The notes: generated from the sequence alone by a model not told the origin. A stretch of DNA of 21,686 nucleotides from Macrostomum lignano (GCA_002269645.1 NIVC01005202.1:1-21686); one strand, 5' to 3'; positions 1 to 21,686 are shown, numbered from the stretch's first letter. Made by a program: numbers and translations.

Positions 1-1420
1 GTTAAGAATCGCCCCCAAACCTCAGCAAGAATCGCCCCCAAACCTCAGTAAGAATCGCCCCAAACCTCAGTAAGAATCGCCCCAAACCTCAGTAAGAATC
101 GCCCCCAAACCTCAGTAAGAATCGCCCCCAAACCTCAGTAAGAATCGCCCCCAAACCTCAGTAAGAATCGCCCAAACCTCAGTAAGAATCGCCCAAACCT
201 CAGTAAGAATCGCCCCAAACCTCAGTAAGAATCGCCCCCAAACCTCAGTAAGAATCGCCCCAAACCTCAGTAAGAATCGCCCCAAACCTCAGTAAGAATC
301 GCCCCAAACCTCAGTAAGAATCGCCCCCAAACCTCAGTAAGAATCGCCCCCAAACCTCAGTAAGAATCGCCCCCAAACCTCAGTAAGAATCGCCCATAAC
401 CTCAGTAAGAATCGCCCCTAACCTCAGTAAGAATCGGCCCCCAAACCTCAGTAAGAATCGCCCAAACCTCAGTAAGAATCGCCCCAAACCTCAGTAAGAA
501 TCGCCCCCAAACCTCAGTAAGAATCGCCCCAAACCTCAGTAAGAATCGCCCCCAAACCTCAGTAAGAATCGCCCCAAACCTCAGTAAGAATCGCCCAAAC
601 CTCAGTAAGAATCGCCCCAAACCTCAGTAAGAATCGCCCCCAAACCTCAGTAAGAATCGCCCCAAACCTCAGTAAGAATCGCCCCCAAACCTCAGTAAGA
701 ATCGCCCCAAACCTCAGTAAGAATCGCCCCAAACCTCAGTAAGAATCGCCCCCAAACCTCAGTAAGAATCGCCCCCAAACCTCAGTAAGAATCGCCCCAA
801 ACCTCAGTAAGAATCGCCCCCAAACCTCAGTAAGAATCGCCCCCAAACCTCAGTAAGAATCGCCCCCAAACCTCAGTAAGAATCGCCCCAAACCTCAGTA
901 AGAATCGCCCCCAAACCTCAGTAAGAATCGCCCCTAACCTCAGTAAGAATCGCCCCCAAACCTCAGTAAGAATCGCCCAAACCTCAGTAAGAATCGCCCC
1001 CAAACCTCAGTAAGAATCGCCCCAAACCTCAGTAAGAATCGCCCCCAAACCTCAGTAAGAATCGCCCCCAAACCTCAGTAAGAATCGCCCCAAACCTCAG
1101 TAAGAATCGCCCCCAAACCTCAGTAAGAATCGCCCCCAAACCTCAGTAAGAATCGCCCCAAACCTCAGTAAGAATCGCCCCCAAACCTCAGTAAGAATCG
1201 CCCCAAACCTCAGTAAGAATCGCCCCAAACCTCAGTAAGAATCGCCCCCAAACCTCAGTAAGAATCGCCCCCAAACCTCAGTAAGAATCGCCCCCAAACC
1301 TCAGTAAGAATCGCCCCAAACCTCAGTAAGAATCGCCCCCAAACCTCAGTAAGAATCGCCCCCAAACCTCAGTAAGAATCGCCCCAAACCTCAGTAAGAA
1401 TCGCCCCAAACCTCATAAGA

Positions 1421-4400
1421 ATCGCCCCAAACCTCAGTAAGAATCGCCCCCAAACCTCAGTAAGAATCGCCCCCAAACCTCAGTAAGAATCGCCCCAAAC
1501 CTCAGTAAGAATCGCCCCCAAACCTCAGTAAGAATCGCCCCCAAACCTCAGTAAGAATCGCCCCCAAACCTCAGTAAGAATCGCCCCCAAACCTCAGTAA
1601 GAATCGCCCCAAACCTCAGTAAGAATCGCCCCCAAACCTCAGTAAGAATCGCCCCCAAACCTCAGTAAGAATCGCCCCAAACCTCAGTAAGAATCGCCCC
1701 AAACCTCAGTAAGAATCGCCCCCAAACCTCAGTAAGAATCGCCCCAAACCTCAGTAAGAATCGCCCCCAAACCTCAGTAAGAATCGCCCCAAACCTCAGT
1801 AAGAATCGCCCCAAACCTCAGTAAGAATCGCCCCCAAACCTCAGTAAGAATCGCCCCCAAACCTCAGTAAGAATCGCCCCCAAACCTCAGTAAGAATCGC
1901 CCCAAACCTCAGTAAGAATCGCCCCCAAACCTCAGTAAGAATCGCCCCCAAACCTCAGTAAGAATCGCCCCCAAACCTCAGTAAGAATCGCCCCCAAACC
2001 TCAGTAAGAATCGCCCCAAACCTCAGTAAGAATCGCCCCCAAACCTCAGTAAGAATCGCCCCAAACCTCAGTAAGAATCGCCCCAAACCTCAGTAAGAAT
2101 CGCCCCCAAACCTCAGTAAGAATCGCCCCCAAACCTCAGTAAGAATCGCCCCCAAACCTCAGTAAGAATCGCCCCCAAACCTCAGTAAGAATCGCCCCCA
2201 AACCTCAGTAAGAATCGCCCCAAACCTCAGTAAGAATCGCCCCAAACCTCAGTAAGAATCGCCCCCAAACCTCAGTAAGAATCGCCCCCAAACCTCAGTA
2301 AGAATCGCCCCCAAACCTCAGTAAGAATCGCCCCAAACCTCAGTAAGAATCGCCCCCAAACCTCAGTAAGAATCGCCCCCAAACCTCAGTAAGAATCGCC
2401 CCAAACCTCAGTAAGAATCGCCCCCAAACCTCAGTAAGAATCGCCCCAAACCTCAGTAAGAATCGCCCCAAACCTCAGTAAGAATCGCCCCAAACCTCAG
2501 TAAGAATCGCCCCCAAACCTCAGTAAGAATCGCCCCCAAACCTCAGTAAGAATCGCCCCAAACCTCAGTAAGAATCGCCCCCAAACCTCAGTAAGAATCG
2601 CCCCAAACCTCAGTAAGAATCGCCCCAAACCTCAGTAAGAATCGCCCCCAAACCTCAGTAAGAATCGCCCCCAAACCTCAGTAAGAATCGCCCCAAACCT
2701 CAGTAAGAATCGCCCCAAACCTCAGTAAGAATCGCCCCCAAACCTCAGTAAGAATCGCCCCCAAACCTCAGTAAGAATCGCCCCCAAACCTCAGTAAGAA
2801 TCGCCCCCAAACCTCAGTAAGAATCGCCCCAAACCTCAGTAAGAATCGCCCCAAACCTCAGTAAGAATCGCCCCCAAACCTCAGTAAGAATCGCCCCAAA
2901 CCTCAGTAAGAATCGCCCCCAAACCTCAGTAAGAATCGCCCCCAAACCTCAGTAAGAATCGCCCCAAACCTCAGTAAGAATCGCCCCCAAACCTCAGTAA
3001 GAATCGCCCCCAAACCTCAGTAAGAATCGCCCCCAAACCTCAGTAAGAATCGCCCCAAACCTCAGTAAGAATCGCCCCCAAACCTCAGTAAGAATCGCCC
3101 CAAACCTCAGTAAGAATCGCCCCCAAACCTCAGTAAGAATCGCCCCCAAACCTCAGTAAGAATCGCCCCCAAACCTCAGTAAGAATCGCCCCCAAACCTC
3201 AGTAAGAATCGCCCCAAACCTCAGTAAGAATCGCCCCCAAACCTCAGTAAGAATCGCCCCCAAACCTCAGTAAGAATCGCCCCCAAACCTCAGTAAGAAT
3301 CGCCCCCAAACCTCAGTAAGAATCGCCCCAAACCTCAGTAAGAATCGCCCCCAAACCTCAGTAAGAATCGCCCCCAAACCTCAGTAAGAATCGCCCCCAA
3401 ACCTCAGTAAGAATCGCCCCAAACCTCAGTAAGAATCGCCCCAAACCTCAGTAAGAATCGCCCCCAAACCTCAGTAAGAATCGCCCCCAAACCTCAGTAA
3501 GAATCGCCCCCAAACCTCAGTAAGAATCGCCCCAAACCTCAGTAAGAATCGCCCCCAAACCTCAGTAAGAATCGCCCCCAAACCTCAGTAAGAATCGCCC
3601 CCAAACCTCAGTAAGAATCGCCCCCAAACCTCAGTAAGAATCGCCCCAAACCTCAGTAAGAATCGCCCCCAAACCTCAGTAAGAATCGCCCCAAACCTCA
3701 GTAAGAATCGCCCCAAACCTCAGTAAGAATCGCCCCCAAACCTCAGTAAGAATCGCCCCAAACCTCAGTAAGAATCGCCCCAAACCTCAGTAAGAATCGC
3801 CCCCAAACCTCAGTAAGAATCGCCCCAAACCTCAGTAAGAATCGCCCCCAAACCTCAGTAAGAATCGCCCCAAACCTCAGTAAGAATCGCCCCCAAACCT
3901 CAGTAAGAATCGCCCCCAAACCTCAGTAAGAATCGCCCCAAACCTCAGTAAGAATCGCCCCAAACCTCAGTAAGAATCGCCCCCAAACCTCAGTAAGAAT
4001 CGCCCCAAACCTCAGTAAGAATCGCCCCAAACCTCAGTAAGAATCGCCCCCAAACCTCAGTAAGAATCGCCCCCAAACCTCAGTAAGAATCGCCCCAAAC
4101 CTCAGTAAGAATCGCCCCAAACCTCAGTAAGAATCGCCCCAAACCTCAGTAAGAATCGCCCCCAAACCTCAGTAAGAATCGCCCCCAAACCTCAGTAAGA
4201 ATCGCCCCCAAACCTCAGTAAGAATCGCCCCAAACCTCAGTAAGAATCGCCCCAAACCTCAGTAAGAATCGCCCCCAAACCTCAGTAAGAATCGCCCCAA
4301 ACCTCAGTAAGAATCGCCCCCAAACCTCAGTAAGAATCGCCCCAAACCTCAGTAAGAATCGCCCCAAACCTCAGTAAGAATCGCCCCAAACCTCAGTAAG

Positions 4401-7400
4401 AATCGCCCCCAAACCTCAGTAAGAATCGCCCCCAAACCTCAGTAAGAATCGCCCCCAAACCTCAGTAAGAATCGCCCCAAACCTCAGTAAGAATCGCCCC
4501 AAACCTCAGTAAGAATCGCCCCCAAACCTCAGTAAGAATCGCCCCCAAACCTCAGTAAGAATCGCCCCCAAACCTCAGTAAGAATCGCCCCCAAACCTCA
4601 GTAAGAATCGCCCCCAAACCTCAGTAAGAATCGCCCCCAAACCTCAGTAAGAATCGCCCCCAAACCTCAGTAAGAATCGCCCCCAAACCTCAGTAAGAAT
4701 CGCCCCAAACCTCAGTAAGAATCGCCCCCAAACCTCAGTAAGAATCGCCCCCAAACCTCAGTAAGAATCGCCCCCAAACCTCAGTAAGAATCGCCCCAAA
4801 CCTCAGTAAGAATCGCCCCAAACCTCAGTAAGAATCGCCCCCAAACCTCAGTAAGAATCGCCCCCAAACCTCAGTAAGAATCGCCCCAAACCTCAGTAAG
4901 AATCGCCCCCAAACCTCAGTAAGAATCGCCCCCAAACCTCAGTAAGAATCGCCCCAAACCTCAGTAAGAATCGCCCCCAAACCTCAGTAAGAATCGCCCC
5001 AAACCTCAGTAAGAATCGCCCCCAAACCTCAGTAAGAATCGCCCCCAAACCTCAGTAAGAATCGCCCCCAAACCTCAGTAAGAATCGCCCCAAACCTCAG
5101 TAAGAATCGCCCCCAAACCTCAGTAAGAATCGCCCCAAACCTCAGTAAGAATCGCCCCCAAACCTCAGTAAGAATCGCCCCAAACCTCAGTAAGAATCGC
5201 CCCAAACCTCAGTAAGAATCGCCCCCAAACCTCAGTAAGAATCGCCCCAAACCTCAGTAAGAATCGCCCCCAAACCTCAGTAAGAATCGCCCCAAACCTC
5301 AGTAAGAATCGCCCCAAACCTCAGTAAGAATCGCCCCCAAACCTCAGTAAGAATCGCCCCAAACCTCAGTAAGAATCGCCCCCAAACCTCAGTAAGAATC
5401 GCCCCCAAACCTCAGTAAGAATCGCCCCCAAACCTCAGTAAGAATCGCCCCAAACCTCAGTAAGAATCGCCCCAAACCTCAGTAAGAATCGCCCCCAAAC
5501 CTCAGTAAGAATCGCCCCAAACCTCAGTAAGAATCGCCCCAAACCTCAGTAAGAATCGCCCCCAAACCTCAGTAAGAATCGCCCCAAACCTCAGTAAGAA
5601 TCGCCCCAAACCTCAGTAAGAATCGCCCCCAAACCTCAGTAAGAATCGCCCCCAAACCTCAGTAAGAATCGCCCCAAACCTCAGTAAGAATCGCCCCCAA
5701 ACCTCAGTAAGAATCGCCCCAAACCTCAGTAAGAATCGCCCCAAACCTCAGTAAGAATCGCCCCCAAACCTCAGTAAGAATCGCCCCCAAACCTCAGTAA
5801 GAATCGCCCCCAAACCTCAGTAAGAATCGCCCCCAAACCTCAGTAAGAATCGCCCCAAACCTCAGTAAGAATCGCCCCCAAACCTCAGTAAGAATCGCCC
5901 CAAACCTCAGTAAGAATCGCCCCAAACCTCAGTAAGAATCGCCCCAAACCTCAGTAAGAATCGCCCCCAAACCTCAGTAAGAATCGCCCCAAACCTCAGT
6001 AAGAATCGCCCCCAAACCTCAGTAAGAATCGCCCCCAAACCTCAGTAAGAATCGCCCCAAACCTCAGTAAGAATCGCCCCAAACCTCAGTAAGAATCGCC
6101 CCCAAACCTCAGTAAGAATCGCCCCCAAACCTCAGTAAGAATCGCCCCCAAACCTCAGTAAGAATCGCCCCAAACCTCAGTAAGAATCGCCCCCAAACCT
6201 CAGTAAGAATCGCCCCAAACCTCAGTAAGAATCGCCCCAAACCTCAGTAAGAATCGCCCCCAAACCTCAGTAAGAATCGCCCCCAAACCTCAGTAAGAAT
6301 CGCCCCAAACCTCAGTAAGAATCGCCCCAAACCTCAGTAAGAATCGCCCCCAAACCTCAGTAAGAATCGCCCCCAAACCTCAGTAAGAATCGCCCCCAAA
6401 CCTCAGTAAGAATCGCCCCCAAACCTCAGTAAGAATCGCCCCAAACCTCAGTAAGAATCGCCCCAAACCTCAGTAAGAATCGCCCCCAAACCTCAGTAAG
6501 AATCGCCCCCAAACCTCAGTAAGAATCGCCCCAAACCTCAGTAAGAATCGCCCCCAAACCTCAGTAAGAATCGCCCCAAACCTCAGTAAGAATCGCCCCC
6601 AAACCTCAGTAAGAATCGCCCCCAAACCTCAGTAAGAATCGCCCCAAACCTCAGTAAGAATCGCCCCCAAACCTCAGTAAGAATCGCCCCCAAACCTCAG
6701 TAAGAATCGCCCCCAAACCTCAGTAAGAATCGCCCCAAACCTCAGTAAGAATCGCCCCAAACCTCAGTAAGAATCGCCCCCAAACCTCAGTAAGAATCGC
6801 CCCCAAACCTCAGTAAGAATCGCCCCCAAACCTCAGTAAGAATCGCCCCAAACCTCAGTAAGAATCGCCCCCAAACCTCAGTAAGAATCGCCCCCAAACC
6901 TCAGTAAGAATCGCCCCCAAACCTCAGTAAGAATCGCCCCCAAACCTCAGTAAGAATCGCCCCAAACCTCAGTAAGAATCGCCCCCAAACCTCAGTAAGA
7001 ATCGCCCCCAAACCTCAGTAAGAATCGCCCCCAAACCTCAGTAAGAATCGCCCCCAAACCTCAGTAAGAATCGCCCCCAAACCTCAGTAAGAATCGCCCC
7101 CAAACCTCAGTAAGAATCGCCCCCAAACCTCAGTAAGAATCGCCCCAAACCTCAGTAAGAATCGCCCCCAAACCTCAGTAAGAATCGCCCCCAAACCTCA
7201 GTAAGAATCGCCCCCAAACCTCAGTAAGAATCGCCCCAAACCTCAGTAAGAATCGCCCCAAACCTCAGTAAGAATCGCCCCCAAACCTCAGTAAGAATCG
7301 CCCCCAAACCTCAGTAAGAATCGCCCCCAAACCTCAGTAAGAATCGCCCCCAAACCTCAGTAAGAATCGCCCCCAAACCTCAGTAAGAATCGCCCCAAAC

Positions 7401-10400
7401 CTCAGTAAGAATCGCCCCAAACCTCAGTAAGAATCGCCCCCAAACCTCAGTAAGAATCGCCCCAAACCTCAGTAAGAATCGCCCCAAACCTCAGTAAGAA
7501 TCGCCCCAAACCTCAGTAAGAATCGCCCCCAAACCTCAGTAAGAATCGCCCCCAAACCTCAGTAAGAATCGCCCCAAACCTCAGTAAGAATCGCCCCAAA
7601 CCTCAGTAAGAATCGCCCCCAAACCTCAGTAAGAATCGCCCCAAACCTCAGTAAGAATCGCCCCAAACCTCAGTAAGAATCGCCCCCAAACCTCAGTAAG
7701 AATCGCCCCAAACCTCAGTAAGAATCGCCCCCAAACCTCAGTAAGAATCGCCCCCAAACCTCAGTAAGAATCGCCCCAAACCTCAGTAAGAATCGCCCCC
7801 AAACCTCAGTAAGAATCGCCCCCAAACCTCAGTAAGAATCGCCCCAAACCTCAGTAAGAATCGCCCCAAACCTCAGTAAGAATCGCCCCCAAACCTCAGT
7901 AAGAATCGCCCCCAAACCTCAGTAAGAATCGCCCCAAACCTCAGTAAGAATCGCCCCAAACCTCAGTAAGAATCGCCCCCAAACCTCAGTAAGAATCGCC
8001 CCCAAACCTCAGTAAGAATCGCCCCCAAACCTCAGTAAGAATCGCCCCAAACCTCAGTAAGAATCGCCCCCAAACCTCAGTAAGAATCGCCCCCAAACCT
8101 CAGTAAGAATCGCCCCCAAACCTCAGTAAGAATCGCCCCCAAACCTCAGTAAGAATCGCCCCAAACCTCAGTAAGAATCGCCCCCAAACCTCAGTAAGAA
8201 TCGCCCCCAAACCTCAGTAAGAATCGCCCCCAAACCTCAGTAAGAATCGCCCCAAACCTCAGTAAGAATCGCCCCCAAACCTCAGTAAGAATCGCCCCCA
8301 AACCTCAGTAAGAATCGCCCCAAACCTCAGTAAGAATCGCCCCAAACCTCAGTAAGAATCGCCCCCAAACCTCAGTAAGAATCGCCCCCAAACCTCAGTA
8401 AGAATCGCCCCAAACCTCAGTAAGAATCGCCCCCAAACCTCAGTAAGAATCGCCCCCAAACCTCAGTAAGAATCGCCCCCAAACCTCAGTAAGAATCGCC
8501 CCCAAACCTCAGTAAGAATCGCCCCAAACCTCAGTAAGAATCGCCCCCAAACCTCAGTAAGAATCGCCCCCAAACCTCAGTAAGAATCGCCCCCAAACCT
8601 CAGTAAGAATCGCCCCAAACCTCAGTAAGAATCGCCCCCAAACCTCAGTAAGAATCGCCCCCAAACCTCAGTAAGAATCGCCCCAAACCTCAGTAAGAAT
8701 CGCCCCCAAACCTCAGTAAGAATCGCCCCCAAACCTCAGTAAGAATCGCCCCAAACCTCAGTAAGAATCGCCCCAAACCTCAGTAAGAATCGCCCCCAAA
8801 CCTCAGTAAGAATCGCCCCCAAACCTCAGTAAGAATCGCCCCCAAACCTCAGTAAGAATCGCCCCCAAACCTCAGTAAGAATCGCCCCCAAACCTCAGTA
8901 AGAATCGCCCCAAACCTCAGTAAGAATCGCCCCCAAACCTCAGTAAGAATCGCCCCAAACCTCAGTAAGAATCGCCCCAAACCTCAGTAAGAATCGCCCC
9001 CAAACCTCAGTAAGAATCGCCCCCAAACCTCAGTAAGAATCGCCCCAAACCTCAGTAAGAATCGCCCCCAAACCTCAGTAAGAATCGCCCCAAACCTCAG
9101 TAAGAATCGCCCCAAACCTCAGTAAGAATCGCCCCCAAACCTCAGTAAGAATCGCCCCCAAACCTCAGTAAGAATCGCCCAAACCTCAGTAAGAATCGCC
9201 CCAAACCTCAGTAAGAATCGCCCCCAAACCTCAGTAAGAATCGCCCCAAACCTCAGTAAGAATCGCCCCCAAACCTCAGTAAGAATCGCCCCAAACCTCA
9301 GTAAGAATCGCCCCAAACCTCAGTAAGAATCGCCCCAAACCTCAGTAAGAATCGCCCCCAAACCTCAGTAAGAATCGCCCCAAACCTCAGTAAGAATCGC
9401 CCCAAACCTCAGTAAGAATCGCCCCCAAACCTCAGTAAGAATCGCCCCCAAACCTCAGTAAGAATCGCCCCCAAACCTCAGTAAGAATCGCCCCAAACCT
9501 CAGTAAGAATCGCCCCCAAACCTCAGTAAGAATCGCCCCCAAACCTCAGTAAGAATCGCCCCAAACCTCAGTAAGAATCGCCCCAAACCTCAGTAAGAAT
9601 CGCCCCAAACCTCAGTAAGAATCGCCCCCAAACCTCAGTAAGAATCGCCCCCAAACCTCAGTAAGAATCGCCCCCAAACCTCAGTAAGAATCGCCCCAAA
9701 CCTCAGTAAGAATCGCCCCCAAACCTCAGTAAGAATCGCCCCCAAACCTCAGTAAGAATCGCCCCAAACCTCAGTAAGAATCGCCCCAAACCTCAGTAAG
9801 AATCGCCCCAAACCTCAGTAAGAATCGCCCCCAAACCTCAGTAAGAATCGCCCCCAAACCTCAGTAAGAATCGCCCCAAACCTCAGTAAGAATCGCCCCA
9901 AACCTCAGTAAGAATCGCCCCAAACCTCAGTAAGAATCGCCCCAAACCTCAGTAAGAATCGCCCCAAACCTCAGTAAGAATCGCCCCCAAACCTCAGTAA
10001 GAATCGCCCCAAACCTCAGTAAGAATCGCCCCAAACCTCAGTAAGAATCGCCCCCAAACCTCAGTAAGAATCGCCCCCAAACCTCAGTAAGAATCGCCCC
10101 AAACCTCAGTAAGAATCGCCCCAAACCTCAGTAAGAATCGCCCCAAACCTCAGTAAGAATCGCCCCCAAACCTCAGTAAGAATCGCCCCAAACCTCAGTA
10201 AGAATCGCCCCCAAACCTCAGTAAGAATCGCCCCCAAACCTCAGTAAGAATCGCCCCCAAACCTCAGTAAGAATCGCCCCCAAACCTCAGTAAGAATCGC
10301 CCCAAACCTCAGTAAGAATCGCCCCCAAACCTCAGTAAGAATCGCCCCCAAACCTCAGTAAGAATCGCCCCCAAACCTCAGTAAGAATCGCCCCAAACCT

Positions 10401-13400
10401 CAGTAAGAATCGCCCCAAACCTCAGTAAGAATCGCCCCCAAACCTCAGTAAGAATCGCCCCCAAACCTCAGTAAGAATCGCCCCAAACCTCAGTAAGAAT
10501 CGCCCCAAACCTCAGTAAGAATCGCCCCCAAACCTCAGTAAGAATCGCCCCCAAACCTCAGTAAGAATCGCCCCCAAACCTCAGTAAGAATCGCCCCAAA
10601 CCTCAGTAAGAATCGCCCCCAAACCTCAGTAAGAATCGCCCCCAAACCTCAGTAAGAATCGCCCCCAAACCTCAGTAAGAATCGCCCCAAACCTCAGTAA
10701 GAATCGCCCCCAAACCTCAGTAAGAATCGCCCCCAAACCTCAGTAAGAATCGCCCCAAACCTCAGTAAGAATCGCCCCAAACCTCAGTAAGAATCGCCCC
10801 CAAACCTCAGTAAGAATCGCCCCCAAACCTCAGTAAGAATCGCCCCAAACCTCAGTAAGAATCGCCCCAAACCTCAGTAAGAATCGCCCCCAAACCTCAG
10901 TAAGAATCGCCCCCAAACCTCAGTAAGAATCGCCCCAAACCTCAGTAAGAATCGCCCCAAACCTCAGTAAGAATCGCCCCCAAACCTCAGTAAGAATCGC
11001 CCCCAAACCTCAGTAAGAATCGCCCCAAACCTCAGTAAGAATCGCCCCAAACCTCAGTAAGAATCGCCCCAAACCTCAGTAAGAATCGCCCCCAAACCTC
11101 AGTAAGAATCGCCCCAAACCTCAGTAAGAATCGCCCCAAACCTCAGTAAGAATCGCCCCCAAACCTCAGTAAGAATCGCCCCAAACCTCAGTAAGAATCG
11201 CCCCAAACCTCAGTAAGAATCGCCCCCAAACCTCAGTAAGAATCGCCCCAAACCTCAGTAAGAATCGCCCCAAACCTCAGTAAGAATCGCCCCCAAACCT
11301 CAGTAAGAATCGCCCCAAACCTCAGTAAGAATCGCCCCCAAACCTCAGTAAGAATCGCCCCAAACCTCAGTAAGAATCGCCCCAAACCTCAGTAAGAATC
11401 GCCCCCAAACCTCAGTAAGAATCGCCCCCAAACCTCAGTAAGAATCGCCCCCAAACCTCAGTAAGAATCGCCCCCAAACCTCAGTAAGAATCGCCCCAAA
11501 CCTCAGTAAGAATCGCCCCCAAACCTCAGTAAGAATCGCCCCAAACCTCAGTAAGAATCGCCCCAAACCTCAGTAAGAATCGCCCCAAACCTCAGTAAGA
11601 ATCGCCCCCAAACCTCAGTAAGAATCGCCCCAAACCTCAGTAAGAATCGCCCCCAAACCTCAGTAAGAATCGCCCCAAACCTCAGTAAGAATCGCCCCCA
11701 AACCTCAGTAAGAATCGCCCCCAAACCTCAGTAAGAATCGCCCCAAACCTCAGTAAGAATCGCCCCCAAACCTCAGTAAGAATCGCCCCCAAACCTCAGT
11801 AAGAATCGCCCCAAACCTCAGTAAGAATCGCCCCAAACCTCAGTAAGAATCGCCCCCAAACCTCAGTAAGAATCGCCCCCAAACCTCAGTAAGAATCGCC
11901 CCAAACCTCAGTAAGAATCGCCCCCAAACCTCAGTAAGAATCGCCCCCAAACCTCAGTAAGAATCGCCCCAAACCTCAGTAAGAATCGCCCAAACCTCAG
12001 TAAGAATCGCCCCCAAACCTCAGTAAGAATCGCCCCAAACCTCAGTAAGAATCGCCCCAAACCTCAGTAAGAATCGCCCCCAAACCTCAGTAAGAATCGC
12101 CCCCAAACCTCAGTAAGAATCGCCCCAAACCTCAGTAAGAATCGCCCCCAAACCTCAGTAAGAATCGCCCCCAAACCTCAGTAAGAATCGCCCCAAACCT
12201 CAGTAAGAATCGCCCCAAACCTCAGTAAGAATCGCCCCCAAACCTCAGTAAGAATCGCCCCCAAACCTCAGTAAGAATCGCCCCAAACCTCAGTAAGAAT
12301 CGCCCCCAAACCTCAGTAAGAATCGCCCCAAACCTCAGTAAGAATCGCCCCCAAACCTCAGTAAGAATCGCCCCCAAACCTCAGTAAGAATCGCCCCCAA
12401 ACCTCAGTAAGAATCGCCCCAAACCTCAGTAAGAATCGCCCCAAACCTCAGTAAGAATCGCCCCCAAACCTCAGTAAGAATCGCCCCCAAACCTCAGTAA
12501 GAATCGCCCCCAAACCTCAGTAAGAATCGCCCCAAACCTCAGTAAGAATCGCCCCAAACCTCAGTAAGAATCGCCCCAAACCTCAGTAAGAATCGCCCCA
12601 AACCTCAGTAAGAATCGCCCCAAACCTCAGTAAGAATCGCCCCAAACCTCAGTAAGAATCGCCCCCAAACCTCAGTAAGAATCGCCCCCAAACCTCAGTA
12701 AGAATCGCCCCCAAACCTCAGTAAGAATCGCCCCAAACCTCAGTAAGAATCGCCCCCAAACCTCAGTAAGAATCGCCCCAAACCTCAGTAAGAATCGCCC
12801 CCAAACCTCAGTAAGAATCGCCCCCAAACCTCAGTAAGAATCGCCCCAAACCTCAGTAAGAATCGCCCCAAACCTCAGTAAGAATCGCCCCAAACCTCAG
12901 TAAGAATCGCCCCAAACCTCAGTAAGAATCGCCCCAAACCTCAGTAAGAATCGCCCCAAACCTCAGTAAGAATCGCCCCCAAACCTCAGTAAGAATCGCC
13001 CCAAACCTCAGTAAGAATCGCCCCCAAACCTCAGTAAGAATCGCCCCAAACCTCAGTAAGAATCGCCCCCAAACCTCAGTAAGAATCGCCCCAAACCTCA
13101 GTAAGAATCGCCCCAAACCTCAGTAAGAATCGCCCCCAAACCTCAGTAAGAATCGCCCCCAAACCTCAGTAAGAATCGCCCCCAAACCTCAGTAAGAATC
13201 GCCCCAAACCTCAGTAAGAATCGCCCCAAACCTCAGTAAGAATCGCCCCAAACCTCAGTAAGAATCGCCCCAAACCTCAGTAAGAATCGCCCCCAAACCT
13301 CAGTAAGAATCGCCCCAAACCTCAGTAAGAATCGCCCCCAAACCTCAGTAAGAATCGCCCCCAAACCTCAGTAAGAATCGCCCCAAACCTCAGTAAGAAT

Positions 13401-16400
13401 CGCCCCCAAACCTCAGTAAGAATCGCCCCAAACCTCAGTAAGAATCGCCCCAAACCTCAGTAAGAATCGCCCCAAACCTCAGTAAGAATCGCCCCAAACC
13501 TCAGTAAGAATCGCCCCCAAACCTCAGTAAGAATCGCCCCCAAACCTCAGTAAGAATCGCCCCAAACCTCAGTAAGAATCGCCCCAAACCTCAGTAAGAA
13601 TCGCCCCCAAACCTCAGTAAGAATCGCCCCCAAACCTCAGTAAGAATCGCCCCAAACCTCAGTAAGAATCGCCCCAAACCTCAGTAAGAATCGCCCCCAA
13701 ACCTCAGTAAGAATCGCCCCAAACCTCAGTAAGAATCGCCCCAAACCTCAGTAAGAATCGCCCCAAACCTCAGTAAGAATCGCCCCAAACCTCAGTAAGA
13801 ATCGCCCCAAACCTCAGTAAGAATCGCCCCAAACCTCAGTAAGAATCGCCCCAAACCTCAGTAAGAATCGCCCCAAACCTCAGTAAGAATCGCCCCAAAC
13901 CTCAGTAAGAATCGCCCCCAAACCTCAGTAAGAATCGCCCCCAAACCTCAGTAAGAATCGCCCCAAACCTCAGTAAGAATCGCCCCAAACCTCAGTAAGA
14001 ATCGCCCCCAAACCTCAGTAAGAATCGCCCCAAACCTCAGTAAGAATCGCCCCAAACCTCAGTAAGAATCGCCCCAAACCTCAGTAAGAATCGCCCCCAA
14101 ACCTCAGTAAGAATCGCCCCCAAACCTCAGTAAGAATCGCCCCAAACCTCAGTAAGAATCGCCCCAAACCTCAGTAAGAATCGCCCCAAACCTCAGTAAG
14201 AATCGCCCCAAACCTCAGTAAGAATCGCCCCAAACCTCAGTAAGAATCGCCCCCAAACCTCAGTAAGAATCGCCCCAAACCTCAGTAAGAATCGCCCCAA
14301 ACCTCAGTAAGAATCGCCCCCAAACCTCAGTAAGAATCGCCCCCAAACCTCAGTAAGAATCGCCCCAAACCTCAGTAAGAATCGCCCCAAACCTCAGTAA
14401 GAATCGCCCCAAACCTCAGTAAGAATCGCCCCAAACCTCAGTAAGAATCGCCCCAAACCTCAGTAAGAATCGCCCCAAACCTCAGTAAGAATCGCCCCCA
14501 AACCTCAGTAAGAATCGCCCCAAACCTCAGTAAGAATCGCCCCCAAACCTCAGTAAGAATCTCCCCCAAACCTCAGTAAGAATCGCCCCAAACCTCAGTA
14601 AGAATCGCCCCCAAACCTCAGTAAGAATCGCCCCCAAACCTCAGTAAGAATCGCCCAAACCTCAGTAAGAATCGCCCCCAAACCTCAGTAAGAATCGCCC
14701 CCAAACCTCAGTAAGAATCGCCCCCAAACCTCAGTTAGAATCGCCCCAAACCTCAGTTAGAATCGCCCCAAACCTCAGTAAGAATCGCCCCAAACCTCAG
14801 TAAGAATCGCCCCCAAACCTCAGTAAGAATCGCCCCCAAACCTCAGTAAGAATCGCCCCCAAACCTCAGTAAGAATCGCCCCAAACCTCAGTAAGAATCG
14901 CCCCCAAACCTCAGTAAGAATCGCCCCAAACCTCAGTAAGAATCGCCCCCAAACCTCAGTAAGAATCGCCCCAAACCTCAGTAAGAATCGCCCCAAACCT
15001 CAGTAAGAATCGCCCCCAAACCTCAGTAAGAATCGCCCCAAACCTCAGTAAGAATCGCCCCAAACCTCAGTAAGAATCGCCCCAAACCTCAGTAAGAATC
15101 GCCCCAAACCTCAGTAAGAATCGCCCCAAACCTCAGTAAGAATCGCCCCCAAACCTCAGTAAGAATCGCCCCAAACCTCAGTAAGAATCGCCCCAAACCT
15201 CAGTAAGAATCGCCCCAAACCTCAGTAAGAATCGCCCCCAAACCTCAGTAAGAATCGCCCCAAACCTCAGTAAGAATCGCCCCAAACCTCAGTAAGAATC
15301 GCCCCAAACCTCAGTAAGAATCGCCCCCAAACCTCAGTAAGAATCGCCCCAAACCTCAGTAAGAATCGCCCCCAAACCTCAGTAAGAATCGCCCCAAACC
15401 TCAGTAAGAATCGCCCCAAACCTCAGTAAGAATCGCCCCCAAACCTCAGTAAGAATCGCCCCAAACCTCAGTAAGAATCGCCCCCAAACCTCAGTAAGAA
15501 TCGCCCCAAACCTCAGTAAGAATCGCCCCAAACCTCAGTAAGAATCGCCCCAAACCTCAGTAAGAATCGCCCCCAAACCTCAGTAAGAATCGCCCCAAAC
15601 CTCAGTAAGAATCGCCCCAAACCTCAGTAAGAATCGCCCCAAACCTCAGTAAGAATCGCCCCCAAACCTCAGTAAGAATCGCCCCCAAACCTCAGTAAGA
15701 ATCGCCCCAAACCTCAGTAAGAATCGCCCCAAACCTCAGTAAGAATCGCCCCAAACCTCAGTAAGAATCGCCCCAAACCTCAGTAAGAATCGCCCCCAAA
15801 CCTCAGTAAGAATCGCCCCCAAACCTCAGTAAGAATCGCCCCAAACCTCAGTAAGAATCGCCCCCAAACCTCAGTAAGAATCGCCCCAAACCTCAGTAAG
15901 AATCGCCCCAAACCTCAGTAAGAATCGCCCCAAACCTCAGTAAGAATCGCCCCAAACCTCAGTAAGAATCGCCCCCAAACCTCAGTAAGAATCGCCCCCA
16001 AACCTCAGTAAGAATCGCCCCCAAACCTCAGTAAGAATCGCCCCAAACCTCAGTAAGAATCGCCCCAAACCTCAGTAAGAATCGCCCCAAACCTCAGTAA
16101 GAATCGCCCCCAAACCTCAGTAAGAATCGCCCCAAACCTCAGTAAGAATCGCCCCCAAACCTCAGTAAGAATCGCCCCCAAACCTCAGTAAGAATCGCCC
16201 CAAACCTCAGTAAGAATCGCCCCAAACCTCAGTAAGAATCGCCCCAAACCTCAGTAAGAATCGCCCCAAACCTCAGTAAGAATCGCCCCCAAACCTCAGT
16301 AAGAATCGCCCCAAACCTCAGTAAGAATCGCCCCCAAACCTCAGTAAGAATCGCCCCAAACCTCAGTAAGAATCGCCCCCAAACCTCAGTAAGAATCGCC

Positions 16401-18230
16401 CCAAACCTCAGTAAGAATCGCCCCCAAACCTCAGTAAGAATCGCCCCAAACCTCAGTAAGAATCGCCCCCAAACCTCAGTAAGAATCGCCCCCAAACCTC
16501 AGTAAGAATCGCCCCAAACCTCAGTAAGAATCGCCCCCAAACCTCAGTAAGAATCGCCCCCAAACCTCAGTAAGAATCGCCCCAAACCTCAGTAAGAATC
16601 GCCCCCAAACCTCAGTAAGAATCGCCCCCAAACCTCAGTAAGAATCGCCCCAAACCTCAGTAAGAATCGCCCCCAAACCTCAGTAAGAATCGCCCCAAAC
16701 CTCAGTAAGAATCGCCCCAAACCTCAGTAAGAATCGCCCCAAACCTCAGTAAGAATCGCCCCAAACCTCAGTAAGAATCGCCCCAAACCTCAGTAAGAAT
16801 CGCCCCAAACCTCAGTAAGAATCGCCCCCAAACCTCAGTAAGAATCGCCCCCAAACCTCAGTAAGAATCGCCCCCAAACCTCAGTAAGAATCGCCCCAAA
16901 CCTCAGTAAGAATCGCCCCCAAACCTCAGTAAGAATCGCCCCAAACCTCAGTAAGAATCGCCCCAAACCTCAGTAAGAATCGCCCCCAAACCTCAGTAAG
17001 AATCGCCCCCAAACCTCAGTAAGAATCGCCCCAAACCTCAGTAAGAATCGCCCCAAACCTCAGTAAGAATCGCCCCCAAACCTCAGTAAGAATCGCCCCC
17101 AAACCTCAGTAAGAATCGCCCCCAAACCTCAGTAAGAATCGCCCCAAACCTCAGTAAGAATCGCCCCAAACCTCAGTAAGAATCGCCCCCAAACCTCAGT
17201 AAGAATCGCCCCAAACCTCAGTAAGAATCGCCCCCAAACCTCAGTAAGAATCGCCCCAAACCTCAGTAAGAATCGCCCCAAACCTCAGTAAGAATCGCCC
17301 CAAACCTCAGTAAGAATCGCCCCAAACCTCAGTAAGAATCGCCCCAAACCTCAGTAAGAATCGCCCCCAAACCTCAGTAAGAATCGCCCCAAACCTCAGT
17401 AAGAATCGCCCCCAAACCTCAGTAAGAATCGCCCCCAAACCTCAGTAAGAATCGCCCCCAAACCTCAGTAAGAATCGCCCCAAACCTCAGTAAGAATCGC
17501 CCCAAACCTCAGTAAGAATCGCCCCCAAACCTCAGTAAGAATCGCCCCAAACCTCAGTAAGAATCGCCCCAAACCTCAGTAAGAATCGCCCCCAAACCTC
17601 AGTAAGAATCGCCCCCAAACCTCAGTAAGAATCGCCCCAAACCTCAGTAAGAATCGCCCCCAAACCTCAGTAAGAATCGCCCCCAAACCTCAGTAAGAAT
17701 CGCCCCAAACCTCAGTAAGAATCGCCCCCAAACCTCAGTAAGAATCGCCCCCAAACCTCAGTAAGAATCGCCCCAAACCTCAGTAAGAATCGCCCCAAAC
17801 CTCAGTAAGAATCGCCCCAAACCTCAGTAAGAATCGCCCCAAACCTCAGTAAGAATCGCCCCCAAACCTCAGTAAGAATCGCCCCCAAACCTCAGTAAGA
17901 ATCGCCCCAAACCTCAGTAAGAATCGCCCCAAACCTCAGTAAGAATCGCCCCAAACCTCAGTAAGAATCGCCCCAAACCTCAGTAAGAATCGCCCCAAAC
18001 CTCAGTAAGAATCGCCCCAAACCTCAGTAAGAATCGCCCCAAACCTCAGTAAGAATCGCCCCAAACCTCAGTAAGAATCGCCCCAAACCTCAGTAAGAAT
18101 CGCCCCAAACCTCAGTAAGAATCGCCCCAAACCTCAGTAAGAATCGCCCCAAACCTCAGTAAGAATCGCCCCAAACCTCAGTAAGAATCGCCCCAAACCT
18201 CAGTAAGAATCGCCCCCAAACCTCAGTAAG
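1421..18230 (-). repeat. Homogeneous core of the array; almost the only variation is C4 versus C5
   Basis: By eye, the only departures from C4/C5 in this interval are C3 units at about 9178, 11989 and 14654, G>T at 14562, and A>T at 14736 and 14758. A few single variants could have been missed without computation. Confidence 0.88.
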
Positions 18231-18901
18231 AATCCCCCAAACCTCAGTAAGAATCGCCCCAAACCTCAGTAAGAATCGCCCCAAACCTCAGTAAGAATCG
18301 CCCCCAAACCTCAGTAAGAATCGCCCCAAACCTCAGTAGAATCGCCCCAAACCTCAGTAAGAATCGCCCCAAACCTCAGTAAGAATCGCCCAAACCTCAG
18401 TAAGAATCGCCCCAAACCTCAGTAAGAATCGCCCCAAACCTCAGTAAGAATCCCCAAACCTCAGTAAGAATCGCCCCAAACCTCAGTAAGAATCGCCCCA
18501 AACCTCAGTAAGAATCGCCCCAAACCTCAGTAAGAATCGCCCCAAACCTCAGTAAGAATCGCCCCAAACCTCAGTAAGAATCGCCCCAAACCTCAGTAAG
18601 AATCGCCCCAAACCTCAGTAAGAATCTCCCCAAACCTCAGTAAGAATCGCCCCAAACCTCAGTAAGAATCGCCCCCAAACCTCAGTAAGAATCGCCCCAA
18701 ACCTCAGTAAGAATCGCCCCAAACCTCAGTAAGAATCGCCCCAAACCTCAGTAAGAATCGCCCCAAACCTCAGTAAGAATCGCCCCCAAACCTCAGTAAG
18801 AATCGCCCCAAACCTCAGTAAGAATCGCCCCAAACCTCAGTAAGAATCGCCCCAAACCTCAGTAAGAATCGCCCCCAAACCTCAGTAAGAATCGCCCCAA
18901 A

Positions 18902-19066
18902 CCTCAGTAAGAAGCGCCCCCAAACCTCAGCAAGAATCGCCCCCAAACATCAGTAAGAATCGCCCCAAACCTCAGTTAGAATCGCCCCAAGCCTCAGTAA
19001 GAAGCGCCCCCAAACCTCAGCAAGAATCGCCCCCAAACATCAGTAAGAATCGCCCCAAACCTCAGT
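18902..19066. repeat. 90-bp (four-monomer) higher-order duplication marked by shared variants
   Basis: 18902-18976 is identical to 18992-19066. Three rare variants recur at lag 90: GAAGCG (18914/19004), AGCAAG (18931/19021) and AAACATC (18949/19039). Confidence 0.92.
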
Positions 19067-19853
19067 AAGAATCCCCCAAACCTCAGTAAGAATCGCCCCA
19101 AACCTCAGTAAGAATCGCCCCCAAACCTCAGTAAGAATCGCCCCAAACCTCAGTAAGAATCGCCCCAAACCTCAGTAAGAATCGCCCCAAACCTCAGTAA
19201 GAATCGCCCCAAACCTCAGTAAGAATCGCCCCCAAACCTCAGTAAGAATCGCCCCAAACCTCAGTAAGAATCGCCCCCAAACCTCAGTAAGAATCGCCCC
19301 CAAACCTCAGTAAGAATCGCCCCAAACCTCAGTTAGAATCGCCCCAAACCTCAGTAAGAATCGCCCCCAAACCTCAGCAAGAATCGCCCCCAAACCTCAG
19401 TAAGAATCGCCCCAAACCTCAGTAAGAATCGCCCCAAACCTCAGTAAGAATCGCCCCCAAACCTCAGTAAGAATCGCCCCAAACCTCAGTAAGAATCGCC
19501 CCCAAACCTCAGTAAGAATCGCCCCAAACCTCAGTAAGAATCGCCCCCAAACCTCAGTAAGAATCGCCCCCAAACCTCAGTAAGAATCGCCCCCAAACCT
19601 CAGTAAGAATCGCCCCCAAACCTCAGTAAGAATCGCCCCAAACCTCAGTAAGAATCGCCCCAAACCTCAGTAAGAATCGCCCCCAAACCTCAGTAAGAAT
19701 CGCCCCTAAACCTCAGTAAGAATCGCCCCAAACCTCAGTAAGAATCGCCCAACCTCAGTAAGAATCGCCCCAAACCTCAGTAAGAATCGCCCCCAAACCT
19801 CAGAAGAATCGCCCCAAACCTCAGTAAGAATCGCCCAACCTCAGCAAGAATCG

Positions 19854-19962
19854 CCCTAATCCTCAGCAAGAATCGCCCTAATCCTCAGCAAGAATCGCCC
19901 TAATCCTCAGCAAGAATCGCCCTAATCCTCAGCAAGAATCGCCCTAATCCTCAGCAAGAATC
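19854..19962 (-). repeat. Block of five copies of variant unit B, CCCTAATCCTCAGCAAGAATCG (G strand CGATTCTTGCTGAGGATTAGGG)
   Basis: Copies start at 19854, 19876, 19898, 19920 and 19942; the fifth lacks its final G. Unit B differs from the 22-bp main unit by three linked substitutions. Confidence 0.95.
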
Positions 19963-21019
19963 CCCTAACCTCAGCAAGAATCGCCCTAACCTCAGCAAGA
20001 ATCGCCCAAACCTCAGTAAGAATCGCCCTAACCTCAGTAAGAATCGCCCCAAACCTCAGTAAGAATCGCCCAAACCTCAGTAAGAATCGCCCTAACCTCA
20101 GTAAGAATCGCCCTAACCTCAGTAAGAATCGCCCAAACCTCAGTAAGAATCGCCCAACCTCAGTAAGAATCGCCCCCAAACCTCAGTAAGAATCCCCAAA
20201 CCTCAGCAAGAATCGCCCTAATCCTCAGTAAGAATCGCCCCAAAACCTCAGTAAGAATCGCCCCTAAACCTCAATAAGAATCGCCCCCCCAAACCTCAGT
20301 AAGAATCGCCCCCAAACCTCAGTAAGAATCGCCCCAAAACCTCAGTAAGAATCGCCCCAAACCTCAGTAAGAATCGCCCCAAACCTCAGTAAGAATCGCC
20401 CCAAGCCTCAGTAAGAAGCGCCCCCAAACCTCAGCAAGAATCGCCCCAAACCTCAGTAAGAATCGCCCCAAACCTCAGTAGAATCGCCCCAAACCTCAGT
20501 AAGAATCGCCCCAAACCTCAGTAAGAATCGCCCCAAACCTCAGTAAGAATCGCCCCAAACCTCAGTTAAGAATCGCCCCAAACCTCAGTAAGAATCCCCC
20601 AAACCTCAGTAAGAATCGCCCCAAACCTCAGTAAGAATCGCCCCCAAACCTCAGTAAGAATCGCCCAAACCTCAGTAAGAATCTCCCCAAACCTCAGTAA
20701 GAATCGCCCCAAACCTCAGTAAGAATCGCCCAAACCTCAGTAAGAATCGCCCCCAAACCTCAGTAAGAATCGCCCCCAAACCTCAGTAAGAATCGCCCCA
20801 AACCTCAGTAAGAATCGCCCCCAAACCTCAGTAAGAATCGCCCCCAAACCTCAGTAAGAATCGCCCCCAAACCTCAGTAAGAATCGCCCCAAACCTCAGT
20901 AAGAATCGCCCAAACCTCAGTAAGAATCGCCCCAAACCTCAGTAAGAATCGCCCCAAACCTCAGTAAGAATCGCCCCCAAACCTCAGTAAGAATCGCCCC
21001 TAAACCTCAGTAAGAATCG

Positions 21020-21120
21020 CCCAATCCTCAGCAAGAATCGCCCAAATCCTCAGCAAGAATCGCCCTAATCCTCAGCAAGAATCGCCCTAATCCTCATCAA
21101 GAATCGCCCCTAATCCTCAG
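21020..21120 (-). repeat. Second, more decayed block of variant unit B
   Basis: About five units carry AATCCTCA, most also with GCAAG and/or CCCTAA (for example CCCTAATCCTCAGCAAGAATCG at 21063-21084). Confidence 0.88.
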
Positions 21121-21482
21121 AAGAATCGCCCAAACCTCAGAAGAATCGCCCCATAACCTCAGTAAGAATCGCCCCCAAACCTCAGTAAGAATCCCCAAAC
21201 AGCAAGAATCGCCCCTAACCTCAGTAAGAATCGCCCCCAAACCTCAGTAAGAATCGCCCAAACCTCAGCAAGAATCGCCCTAACCTCAGCAAGAATCCCC
21301 CAAATCCTCAGTAAGAATCTCCCAAGCCTCAGTAAGAATCGCCCCAAACCTCAGTAAGAATCGCCCCAAACCCAGCAAGAATCGCCCCAAACCTCAGTAA
21401 GAATCGCCCCAAACCCAGCAAGAATCGCCCCAAAACCTCGATATTAATCATGCTAGAGAAATGAGCAAGCAGAAAAATAAAA

Positions 21483-21523
21483 GTGCAGATCAGTCAGACT
21501 GACTGAGAAAACTAAGTCTGCAC
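21483..21523. repeat. Nested inverted repeats: GTGCAGA/TCTGCAC enclosing the palindrome TCAGTCAG-A-CTGACTGA
   Basis: The outer arms are 21483-21489 and 21517-21523 (7 bp, perfect). The inner arms are 21490-21497 and 21499-21506 (8 bp, perfect, 1-nt spacer). Function unknown. Confidence 0.8.
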
Positions 21524-21611
21524 AACAGTGACTAGGTCAGATTAAATAGCTTCGCGAGTCACTAGGGTGTAAAGTACAGTAGTTAACCTTAAATTGGAAA
21601 CTGAACCGTAA

Positions 21612-21654
21612 AGTAGACAAAAAAGTAGATAGGCGAGTAGATGATATAGTAGAT
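21612..21654 (+). repeat. Four AGTAGA(T) motifs at an exact 12-bp period
   Basis: AGTAGA starts at 21612, 21624, 21636 and 21648; the last three are AGTAGAT. The intervening bases differ between copies. Out-of-phase GTAGA (21657) and GTAGG (21666) follow. Confidence 0.8.
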
Positions 21655-21686
21655 ACGTAGAAAGTGTAGGTAAAAATTAGACCAGT

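Follow-up and report, generated by a model that had tools for sequence, protein, structure and literature searches.

The window analysed here, a stretch of 21,686 nt, consists almost entirely of one head-to-tail array of 22/23-bp units, which extends over 21.4 kb (3..21439). Tandem Repeats Finder reports this region as a single array with a period of 22 (equally 45), 955.9 copies, 96% matches, 2% indels, a score of 37859 and the consensus TAAGAATCGCCCCAAACCTCAG. An independent segmentation yielded 956 units, all in one orientation, in agreement with the roughly 950 same-orientation copies noted in an earlier sequence-only reading; the + strand correspondingly carries 947 copies of the anchor AAGAATC, and 0 are found in reverse. 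Two units, which differ from each other by the C-run alone, are equally abundant and together constitute 91% of the array: 437 units of 22 bp with the structure TAAGAATCG-C4-AAACCTCAG, and 437 units of 23 bp with the structure TAAGAATCG-C5-AAACCTCAG. The unit length of 22/23 bp given previously thus corresponds exactly to the C4 and C5 forms. A C3 form is rare, accounting for ~2-4% by count (15/956 standard units, or 36/940 C-runs), and over all C-runs the balance is 462 C4 vs 441 C5. The A3 run, in contrast to the C-run, is constant (915 A3, 3 A2, 2 A4).

The + strand has a GC skew of ~ -0.47 over the whole array, and the G/T-rich strand is therefore the - strand, which contains 8 G, 8 T, 3 A and 3 C per unit and points with its 3' end toward coordinate 1, as had been proposed. 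An array of co-oriented units whose G-rich strand points 5'->3' to the window end has the polarity expected of a telomerase-type array. Polarity taken by itself has a 50% chance of being a coincidence. On the G strand a TTTGGGG core is present in the unit, no hairpin is predicted (MFE 0), and the sequence is less structured than 200/200 shuffles. The statement that the unit is devoid of a GGTGT-like core was corroborated, with 0 occurrences of GGTGT/ACACC in the array.

Three zones can be distinguished along the array, all read on the - strand. The outermost part (1..1449) comprises 65 units, namely the standard unit together with 6 variant and 5 C3 units, and leaves the window at base 1; variants are located at 26, 384-430, 922 and 1397, and two read CCCCTAACC, which corresponds to TTAGGGG on the G strand. 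The clean zone (1450..18226) is made of ~745 units, nearly all 22-bp (C4) or 23-bp (C5), in random order. Among the 744 units (16,743 bp) between 1450 and 18200 just 6 are non-standard, 3 being substituted (14554, 14735 and 14757) and 3 being C3 (9169, 11980 and 14645), while the share of C5 drops from 59% in the distal half of the zone to 43% in the proximal half (chi-square p = 1e-5). In the decayed proximal zone (18227..21439) variants become denser toward the junction and form blocks and small duplications. Non-standard units thus amount to 6/744 in the clean zone, vs 58/147 from 18200 to 21439 and 11/65 in the first 1.45 kb. The suggestion of a clean outer and a decayed inner array is thereby confirmed, with the qualification that the array is cleaner in its middle than in the outermost 1.45 kb.

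The proximal zone has a distinctive internal structure. Five identical tandem variant units CAAGAATCGCCCTAATCCTCAG, whose G strand CTGAGGATTAGGGCGATTCTTG contains TTAGGG, are located at 19845..19954 (- strand), and the same variant is found again at 20207 and 21054. There are 19 copies of the hexamer CCCTAA between 18200 and 21439 and two more in the first 1 kb, against 0 in the clean zone; TTAGGG is accordingly limited to variant units (21 in all, of which 19 are proximal) and is absent from the main unit. A block of marked units at 18908..19043 (- strand), TAAGAAGCGCCCCC... followed by CAAGAATCGCCCCCAAACATCAG, is duplicated with a repeat spacing of 4 units (90 bp), and the pair AAGCC and AAGCG appears once more at 20390-20434. 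The repeated block reveals local duplication in this zone, and shows that the proximal zone evolved by local duplication and the clean zone did not.

The variant classes of the proximal zone also bear on the quality of the sequence itself. A technical artefact could concern the whole array, as a concatemer, an amplification product or a mis-assembled collapse or expansion, or the C4/C5 mix alone, through homopolymer miscalling; it is regarded as very unlikely. Long-read consensus errors cluster in homopolymers, the exact tie of 437 vs 437 resembles a coin flip, and no independent copy of the repeat was present in the sequence collections searched. Each proximal variant class, however, keeps one C-run length (7/7 C3, 3/3 C5, 3/3 C4 and several 2/2), and so do the three copies of a duplicated proximal block, which indicates that C-run lengths were reproducibly read. 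The remainder of the sequence is nearly error-free, with 6 non-standard units in 16.7 kb and a constant A3 run, and the C5 share shifts smoothly along the array. A concatemer, moreover, would not be expected to decay along a natural-looking gradient, to contain duplicated blocks or to pass into unique DNA at a junction. An assembler consensus picking either 4 or 5 for each C-run may be a residual source of artefact.

The array ends at a junction at 21439/21440, beyond which the flank (21440..21686) consists of 247 bp of unique DNA with 36% GC and no recognisable gene or RNA. The sharp junction to unique DNA described earlier is therefore present, but the first ~20 flank bases resemble a further decayed unit (71% to a unit) and the unique DNA is limited to 247 bp. 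A search of the inner array and flank against RNA families returned just two chance-level snoRNA matches (E = 0.6-0.9). The junction and flank had 0 matches among plasmids and phages, and a 29-mer of the flank had 0 matches in viral and metagenome contigs.

A homogeneous distal part followed by a diverged proximal part is the layout of a telomeric array, and it is compatible with the edge of a satellite as well. Satellite arrays, too, decay at their edges beside unique DNA, and their homogenised interior and decayed margins reproduce the pattern of this array. The assembly or window might end by chance inside an ordinary internal, pericentromeric or subtelomeric 22/23-bp satellite and the end of the array would then not be that of a chromosome, an explanation considered unlikely. 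The array does run off the window, the flank measures 247 bp, the cluster of variants in the first 1.45 kb may point to a continuation of the array past base 1, and the motif is absent as a telomere motif from the searchable paper texts and sequence collections. Unequal exchange in satellites, on the other hand, leads to similar neighbours and higher-order repeats; here a lag-1 autocorrelation of -0.055 was obtained, and repeated patterns are absent. Variants are clustered in the proximal zone but not in the clean zone. The satellite explanation would furthermore make coincidences of the G/T asymmetry, the TTTGGGG core, the TTAGGG in older units and the left-end polarity.

The order of C4 and C5 units was read as a bar code, in which recurring blocks were sought over a series of 738 units. 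This order is indistinguishable from random: a runs test gives z = 0.95, the longest 4/5 string that recurs (19) falls inside the shuffle range, and the best self-match score of the series is 25 vs a null of 22.6 +/- 2.7. Runs test, repeated strings and self-alignment detected neither higher-order repeat, internal duplication nor periodicity in the clean zone. What is found is the pattern of unit-by-unit synthesis, in which the C/G-run varies and no block is duplicated, with two weak departures: a lag-2 anticorrelation (-0.14, 3.8 sd) and the drift in C5 share. The random order implies that the heterogeneity arose unit by unit at synthesis and not through spreading by unequal exchange, by a rolling circle or by duplication of blocks, processes from which repeated patterns are expected. 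Mutation was rejected as the source of the mix, as the 4-5 nt run would need ~250x more hits than the rest of the unit, a figure estimated by us from unit and run counts. Rolling-circle or t-circle copying was likewise rejected for the clean zone, given that any circle below the size of the zone would produce a periodic C4/C5 pattern and none was found.

The same series is informative about a terminal repeat kept without telomerase, by recombination, gene conversion or break-induced replication, which is assessed as quite improbable. Telomerase-free ends with units of 14-32 bp, one of exactly 22 bp, are documented (PMC7694509; PMC12051294; bioRxiv 10.1101/2020.04.17.047084), and such terminal repeats are likewise G-rich and oriented (PMC10844300). 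Kilobase arrays are usual at these ends, so that >21 kb suits them better than yeast telomerase repeats; block duplications, as under telomerase-free maintenance, are present in the proximal zone, and a unit without known telomere-protein sites is compatible with an end of this kind. Copy-based maintenance should, however, leave traces, whereas the 738-unit series contains neither duplicated block nor periodicity, and small duplications are confined to the proximal zone. The array also holds one repeat family, in contrast to Rhynchosciara, where segmental duplications and intermingled M-16 and M-22 are observed (PMC7694509). A mechanism limited to copying could not by itself supply a random C4/C5 mix in otherwise near-perfect repeats, although copying from other chromosome ends would be invisible in one array.

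The reading preferred here, and considered moderately probable, is that of the telomere of a eukaryotic chromosome, made by telomerase with a template of more than 22 nt, in which slippage of register in the G-run, or two RNA alleles, would generate the 22/23-nt repeats. The ~17 kb of nearly error-free repeats, with G4-vs-G5 as the only heterogeneity, supports telomerase-type synthesis. Telomerase would add the G-rich strand, 5'-CTGAGGTTTGGGG(G)CGATTCTTA-3', unit by unit toward coordinate 1. Its RNA template would comprise one unit and a few repeated bases, ~26 nt in all, e.g. 5'-CCCCAAACCUCAGUAAGAAUCGCCCC-3', with both ends predicted to sit in the C-run. Such ends would allow the DNA end to pair in either of two registers at each round, or the enzyme to stutter in the run, and the outcome would be a 22- or 23-nt repeat with near-equal odds. 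Alternatively, two telomerase RNA alleles bearing C4 and C5 templates may take turns, each adding a single repeat per event. On the preferred reading the outer ~18 kb would represent the portion that is lost and resynthesised, while the inner 3 kb, never resynthesised, would gather mutations and local duplications and retain older unit types, including the TTAGGG-plus-spacer form, the probable ancestor of the present unit.

The proposal of a telomere made in the sequence-only reading thus gains from the polarity, the clean distal and decayed proximal parts, the variation confined to the G-run, the random unit order and the basal TTAGGG, but a decayed edge is equally satellite-like. The array is a candidate chromosome end, seen at one locus; it runs off the window, and long satellites are frequent break points of assemblies. 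Several features count against the telomerase reading. The outermost 1.45 kb contains more non-standard units than the middle does, unlike what would be expected of the newest telomerase product, unless low read support at a contig end is the cause. The main unit, devoid of both GGTGT (Rap1-type) and TTAGGG (Myb-type) sites, offers no obvious protein-binding site. The drift of C5 from 59% to 43% and the lag-2 anticorrelation are not predicted by a constant coin-flip model. Long-unit telomeres are a kind already known, for which an array of >21 kb would be unusual: those known from yeasts span hundreds of bp to a few kb, a size far exceeded here. The complete picture, namely eukaryote telomeres of >20 kb built on a 22/23-nt unit that has lost both the TTAGGG and the GGTGT core for protein binding, copied from a ~26-nt template ending in the C-run with registers chosen near 50:50, and with an older TTAGGG-and-spacer unit at the base, is put forward tentatively, as a possibility on the doubtful side.

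The motif was also sought elsewhere. Halves of the unit (non-overlapping, on both strands and in any rotation) gave 43 matches in searchable paper texts, all of them chance primer matches, and a search of paper texts by phrase for 22/23-bp telomeric repeats, with TeloBase and the motif tables of yeast surveys outside its scope, returned nothing relevant. A literature match in Wickerhamomyces was discarded, being an 11-bp unit used twice. Motif fragments were absent from papers on telomerase-free terminal repeats, in which the full M-22 and TRU sequences are not printed. The exact unit occurred 0 times in viral contigs and 0 times in metagenome contigs; in 596 Gb of prokaryote genomes it had 2 single, non-tandem matches only, which are taken as chance for a 19-mer in 596 Gb. 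For the translated longest spurious ORF of the repeat, no identical or similar predicted protein is on record. A prokaryotic or phage origin was discarded for lack of matches, and other candidates were set aside: Plasmodium Rep20, a 21-bp subtelomeric repeat, differs in sequence and is far too AT-rich; the tandem-repeat telomeres of linear mitochondrial genomes have units of 31-738 bp and short arrays; and a CRISPR is excluded by an array without spacers. The novelty of the motif is uncontradicted by the searches of paper texts and sequence collections, yet not established.

Were the array a true telomere, it would combine one of the longer known telomerase units with a length otherwise typical of arrays built on short units, and its sequence would reveal the enzyme at work through 738 consecutive, near-independent choices between two registers. 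Its decayed base, with TTAGGG and spacer, would be a natural record of a change in telomerase template, a question treated for yeasts in PMC7857110 and PMC12449055, and telomere-binding proteins must then have changed along with the template. In an organism without telomerase, the random C4/C5 pattern would demand a new explanation. More generally, reading two unit variants as a bar code may allow telomerase-made terminal arrays to be told apart cheaply from copy-made ones, whatever the long-read assembly.

Older or diverged units on the centromere side and the current unit at the distal end are known from the base of human telomeres and from the template-switch 'fossils' left in yeast telomerase RNA mutants. 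In a comparison by layout, this arrangement is matched between 18.2 and 21.4 kb, a zone that contains TTAGGG-type units.

Among telomerase-free systems, the closest are the chromosome ends of Diptera with units of 14-32 bp (PMC7694509; bioRxiv 10.1101/2020.04.17.047084). The cases considered include M-22, M-16 and T-14 of Rhynchosciara americana, the Anopheles albimanus telomeric repeat unit (TRU) of 30-32 bp, Meloidogyne, whose repeats are composite, and Microstromatales, telomerase-negative yeasts with end-specific motifs. As in the array, the tandem units of lower Diptera, one of them of 22 bp, reach the ends, vary slightly in length and form kilobase arrays, and the A. albimanus repeat is BAL31-sensitive; Rhynchosciara and A. 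albimanus are compared by description, their unit sequences not being printed in the texts. The arrays of lower Diptera differ in their segmental duplications and intermingled families, whereas a single family and a clean zone without duplication are present here.

Telomeric units of yeasts measure 5-43 nt (PMC7857110), and that of Spathaspora 34 nt (PMC6341069), so that the upper limit of about 26 bp previously given for long yeast units falls short of the reported range. Long units of Saccharomycotina include those of Candida parapsilosis (23 bp, CCGGATGTTGATTATACTGAGGT), C. albicans (23 bp), Lodderomyces beijingensis (24 bp), Spathaspora passalidarum (34 nt) and Pichia norvegensis (43 nt), and the 22/23 of the array lies within their range. 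Further similarities are the only moderately G-rich composition, the requirement for a template longer than the unit, and a heterogeneity of repeats such as that described there from stuttering, register choice or, in C. tropicalis, two TER alleles (PMC7857110). The proximal TTAGGG and spacer units fit the 'TTAGGG + spacer' stage proposed early in the evolution of yeast repeats (PMC12449055). In contrast to these yeasts, the main unit carries neither a Rap1-type GGTGT or CGGATG core nor the TTAGGG (Tay1) core of early-branching lineages (Candida conserved positions: PMC6341069). The 9-mer TACTGAGGT and GATT are common to the array unit and that of C. parapsilosis, the 9-mer match having p = 0.004 for a single comparison and being non-significant after multiple testing. 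Kinship with C. parapsilosis was rejected, since the species was picked among dozens of motifs and the core CGGATG is missing; the 9-mer is a lead, not evidence of relatedness, and the unit of L. beijingensis, a relative of C. parapsilosis, has no similarity to that of the array.

The variation of the G number at one place of the unit is likewise seen in the G2-8TTACA(C) repeats of S. pombe and in the stuttering template mutants of Tetrahymena, where it arises stochastically, round by round, from register choice, read-through or stuttering (PMC7857110; PMC6341069). The units of S. pombe and Tetrahymena are of 6-14 nt, whereas in the array a 22-nt unit is combined with a run of essentially 4 or 5.

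Nearly the whole window is occupied by a single tandem array at 3..21439 (Tandem Repeats Finder: period 22, equally 45; 955.9 copies; 96% matches), which is divided into 956 units by dynamic-programming segmentation. The unit, CCCCAAACCTCAGTAAGAATCGCCCC in any rotation, reads TAAGAATCG-Cn-AAACCTCAG on the + strand. The class with n=4 (C4, 22 bp) and that with n=5 (C5, 23 bp) tie exactly over the whole array, 437 vs 437, while n=3 (C3) accounts for 15 units and many other rare types for 67 in total. Orientation is uniform, the AAGAATC anchor occurring 947 times on the + strand and 0 times reversed, and the GC skew of the + strand is about -0.47 throughout; the G/T-rich strand, 5'-CTGAGGTTTGGGG(G)CGATTCTTA-3' with 8 G, 8 T, 3 A and 3 C per unit, is therefore the - strand, with its 3' end toward coordinate 1. 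Left chromosome ends have this polarity. Six units of the G strand treated as ssDNA (5000-5134, - strand) have an MFE of 0 kcal/mol, with no predicted hairpin or pairing, and each of 200 dinucleotide-preserving shuffles gives a more stable fold (z = +2.4); on this prediction the unit seems to avoid self-complementarity. With G-runs of 4-5 at 18-nt spacing, it would also be a poor candidate for intramolecular quadruplexes.

The sequence-only reading had described a clean outer array and a decayed inner one, which is right overall, although the cleanest stretch does not lie in the outermost 1.4 kb. The clean zone (1450-18200) comprises 744 units in 16,743 bp, three of them substituted (14554, 14735 and 14757) and three C3. 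The sole cluster of substituted units in this zone, at 14554-14778, consists of TCTCCCCC at 14554, a C3 unit at 14645 and two neighbouring TTAGAATCG units at 14735 and 14757; TTAGAATCG is seen again at 19333. In the proximal decayed zone (18200-21439), 58 of the 147 units are variants, sparse first and dense from ~19.7 kb. They are grouped in blocks, such as five identical CAAGAATCGCCCTAATCCTCAG units at 19845-19954 and a marked two-unit block at 18908 and 18998, repeated at 90-bp spacing, part of which recurs at 20412. The motif CCCTAA, TTAGGG on the G strand, is present in 19 proximal units, in none of the clean zone and in two of the first kilobase. The outermost zone (1-1449; 65 units, with six variants and five C3) is dirtier than the array middle and includes three consecutive variants at 384-452; two CCCCTAACC units, at 406 and 922, are of the same type as proximal variants. 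Low read support at the contig end, real telomerase errors or continuation of the array past base 1 may explain the outermost variants.

Beyond 21439 lie 247 bp of unique DNA (36% GC), in which no ORF and no match to RNA families were found, and which shows no similarity to plasmids, phages, viral or metagenome contigs. This flank holds a perfect small palindrome at 21490-21506, TCAGTCAG-A-CTGACTGA, with 8-bp arms and a 1-nt loop; GTGCAGA and TCTGCAC enclose it. The arm CTGACTGAG of this palindrome is similar (inverted repeat I1, 89%) to CTGAGG / CTCAGTAAG within the repeat unit. Short direct repeats with an AGTAGA(C/T)A-type motif occur at 21612-21655 as 20-nt copies, 24 nt apart and 80% identical. 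The exact repeat unit likewise had no match among viral contigs, metagenome contigs, plasmids or phages, and 596 Gb of prokaryote genomes gave two isolated matches only, taken as chance. No predicted protein on record derives from the repeat, and the motif was not found in searchable paper texts, a search that did not extend to TeloBase and supplementary motif tables.

An artefact, whether of the whole array or of the mixture of C4 and C5 units through consensus error, is very improbable. Sequence quality outside the C-run is very high. The A-run of the unit is nearly constant (A3 915, A2 3, A4 2), whereas the C-run is split (C4 462 vs C5 441, counting runs over all the array). Proximal units marked by another substitution have one C-run length per class, namely C3 in 7/7, C5 in 3/3 (copies of a duplicated block among them), C4 in 3/3 and a uniform length in several classes of 2/2, and only three marked proximal classes are mixed. 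Since marked classes keep their own C-run length, run length is read reproducibly and has been inherited through duplications. The heterogeneity is taken as real, if not with full certainty, rather than as a consensus artefact.

The most informative feature of the array is the order of C4 and C5 units along it, a kind of bar code. Because existing patterns are propagated by unequal exchange, rolling-circle copying and block duplication alike, any of these should leave repeats or periodicity in the bar code; no such trace was seen in the clean-zone series, which is statistically random (runs test z = 0.95; lag-1 autocorrelation -0.055). Its longest recurring string is 19 units, within the shuffle range of 14-22, and its best ungapped self-match with mismatches scores 25, a value that 17% of shuffles reach (shuffles 22.6 +/- 2.7). 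This bears on the reading of the array as an internal satellite cut by the window, in which unequal exchange would have left repeats in the C4/C5 order. Such a satellite would agree with an array that runs off the window edge at coordinate 1 and occupies one locus in the window; satellites, too, typically decay at an edge that adjoins unique DNA, and telomere-like polarity alone is a 50% coincidence. We regard an internal satellite as unlikely.

Point mutation was rejected as the source of the mix: across the 744 units, the other 18 positions show a total of three substitutions, and by an estimate from these counts the C-run would have to mutate at ~250 times the rate of the whole remainder of the unit. 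The natural source is unit-by-unit synthesis in which chance decides a single position, and telomerase makes each unit anew. We lean, with modest confidence, towards a telomerase-made telomere. Two features of the series do not fit a simple coin flip. In the distal half of the clean zone, toward coordinate 1, C5 makes up 59% of the units, and in the proximal half 43% (chi-square p = 1e-5), a steady fall with position (r = -0.17, p = 2e-6; 1450-18200). Lag-2 autocorrelation is weakly negative (-0.14, 3.8 sd; marginal after correction for 300 lags), and runs of exactly two are overrepresented (121 vs ~95 expected by our own estimate), which hints at a slight 4-4-5-5 tendency.

Terminal repeats are also known from telomerase-free ends, including Rhynchosciara M-22, M-16 and T-14, the BAL31-sensitive 30-32 bp unit of A. 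albimanus, the composite, G-rich and oriented repeats of Meloidogyne, and the end-specific motifs of 41-132 bp in telomerase-negative Microstromatales. Unit size and polarity, comparable in these systems, are therefore no proof of telomerase by themselves. A telomerase-free terminal satellite is nevertheless quite improbable here, as a bar code free of duplications speaks against copying as the means of maintenance within the present array.

For a telomerase-made array, the template would be a single unit extended by a few repeated bases, with both ends inside the C-run, e.g. 5'-CCCCAAACCUCAGUAAGAAUCGCCCC-3', and each round would be followed by re-pairing of the terminal G-run of the DNA in one of two registers; two template alleles could replace this register choice. 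Published mechanisms of repeat heterogeneity include stuttering, different-register alignment and template-boundary read-through, and for some C. tropicalis strains with two unit types the proposed source is a pair of telomerase RNA alleles (PMC7857110). Turnover would be confined to the outer ~18 kb, the inner 3 kb never being resynthesised and so undergoing decay and local duplication. The inner zone may retain older units of the form TTAGGG plus a 16-nt spacer; these match a stage, proposed for the early evolution of yeast repeats, in which a spacer interrupts TTAGGG (PMC12449055).

Long-unit telomeric repeats are a known kind, and the finding is placed among them. Reported yeast telomeric units measure 5-43 nt (PMC7857110), examples being C. 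parapsilosis and C. albicans (23 bp), Spathaspora (34 nt) and L. beijingensis (24 bp). The present unit is like the long yeast repeats in length and kind of heterogeneity, but does not have their GGTGT or CGGATG cores. Its stretch TACTGAGGT also occurs in the unit of C. parapsilosis (p = 0.004, one comparison), which is only a lead given the many motifs open to comparison. The array is about ten times longer than expected for yeast long-unit telomeres, and what is noteworthy is its pairing of a long unit with >21 kb of array, its clean two-register pattern and its TTAGGG-bearing base.
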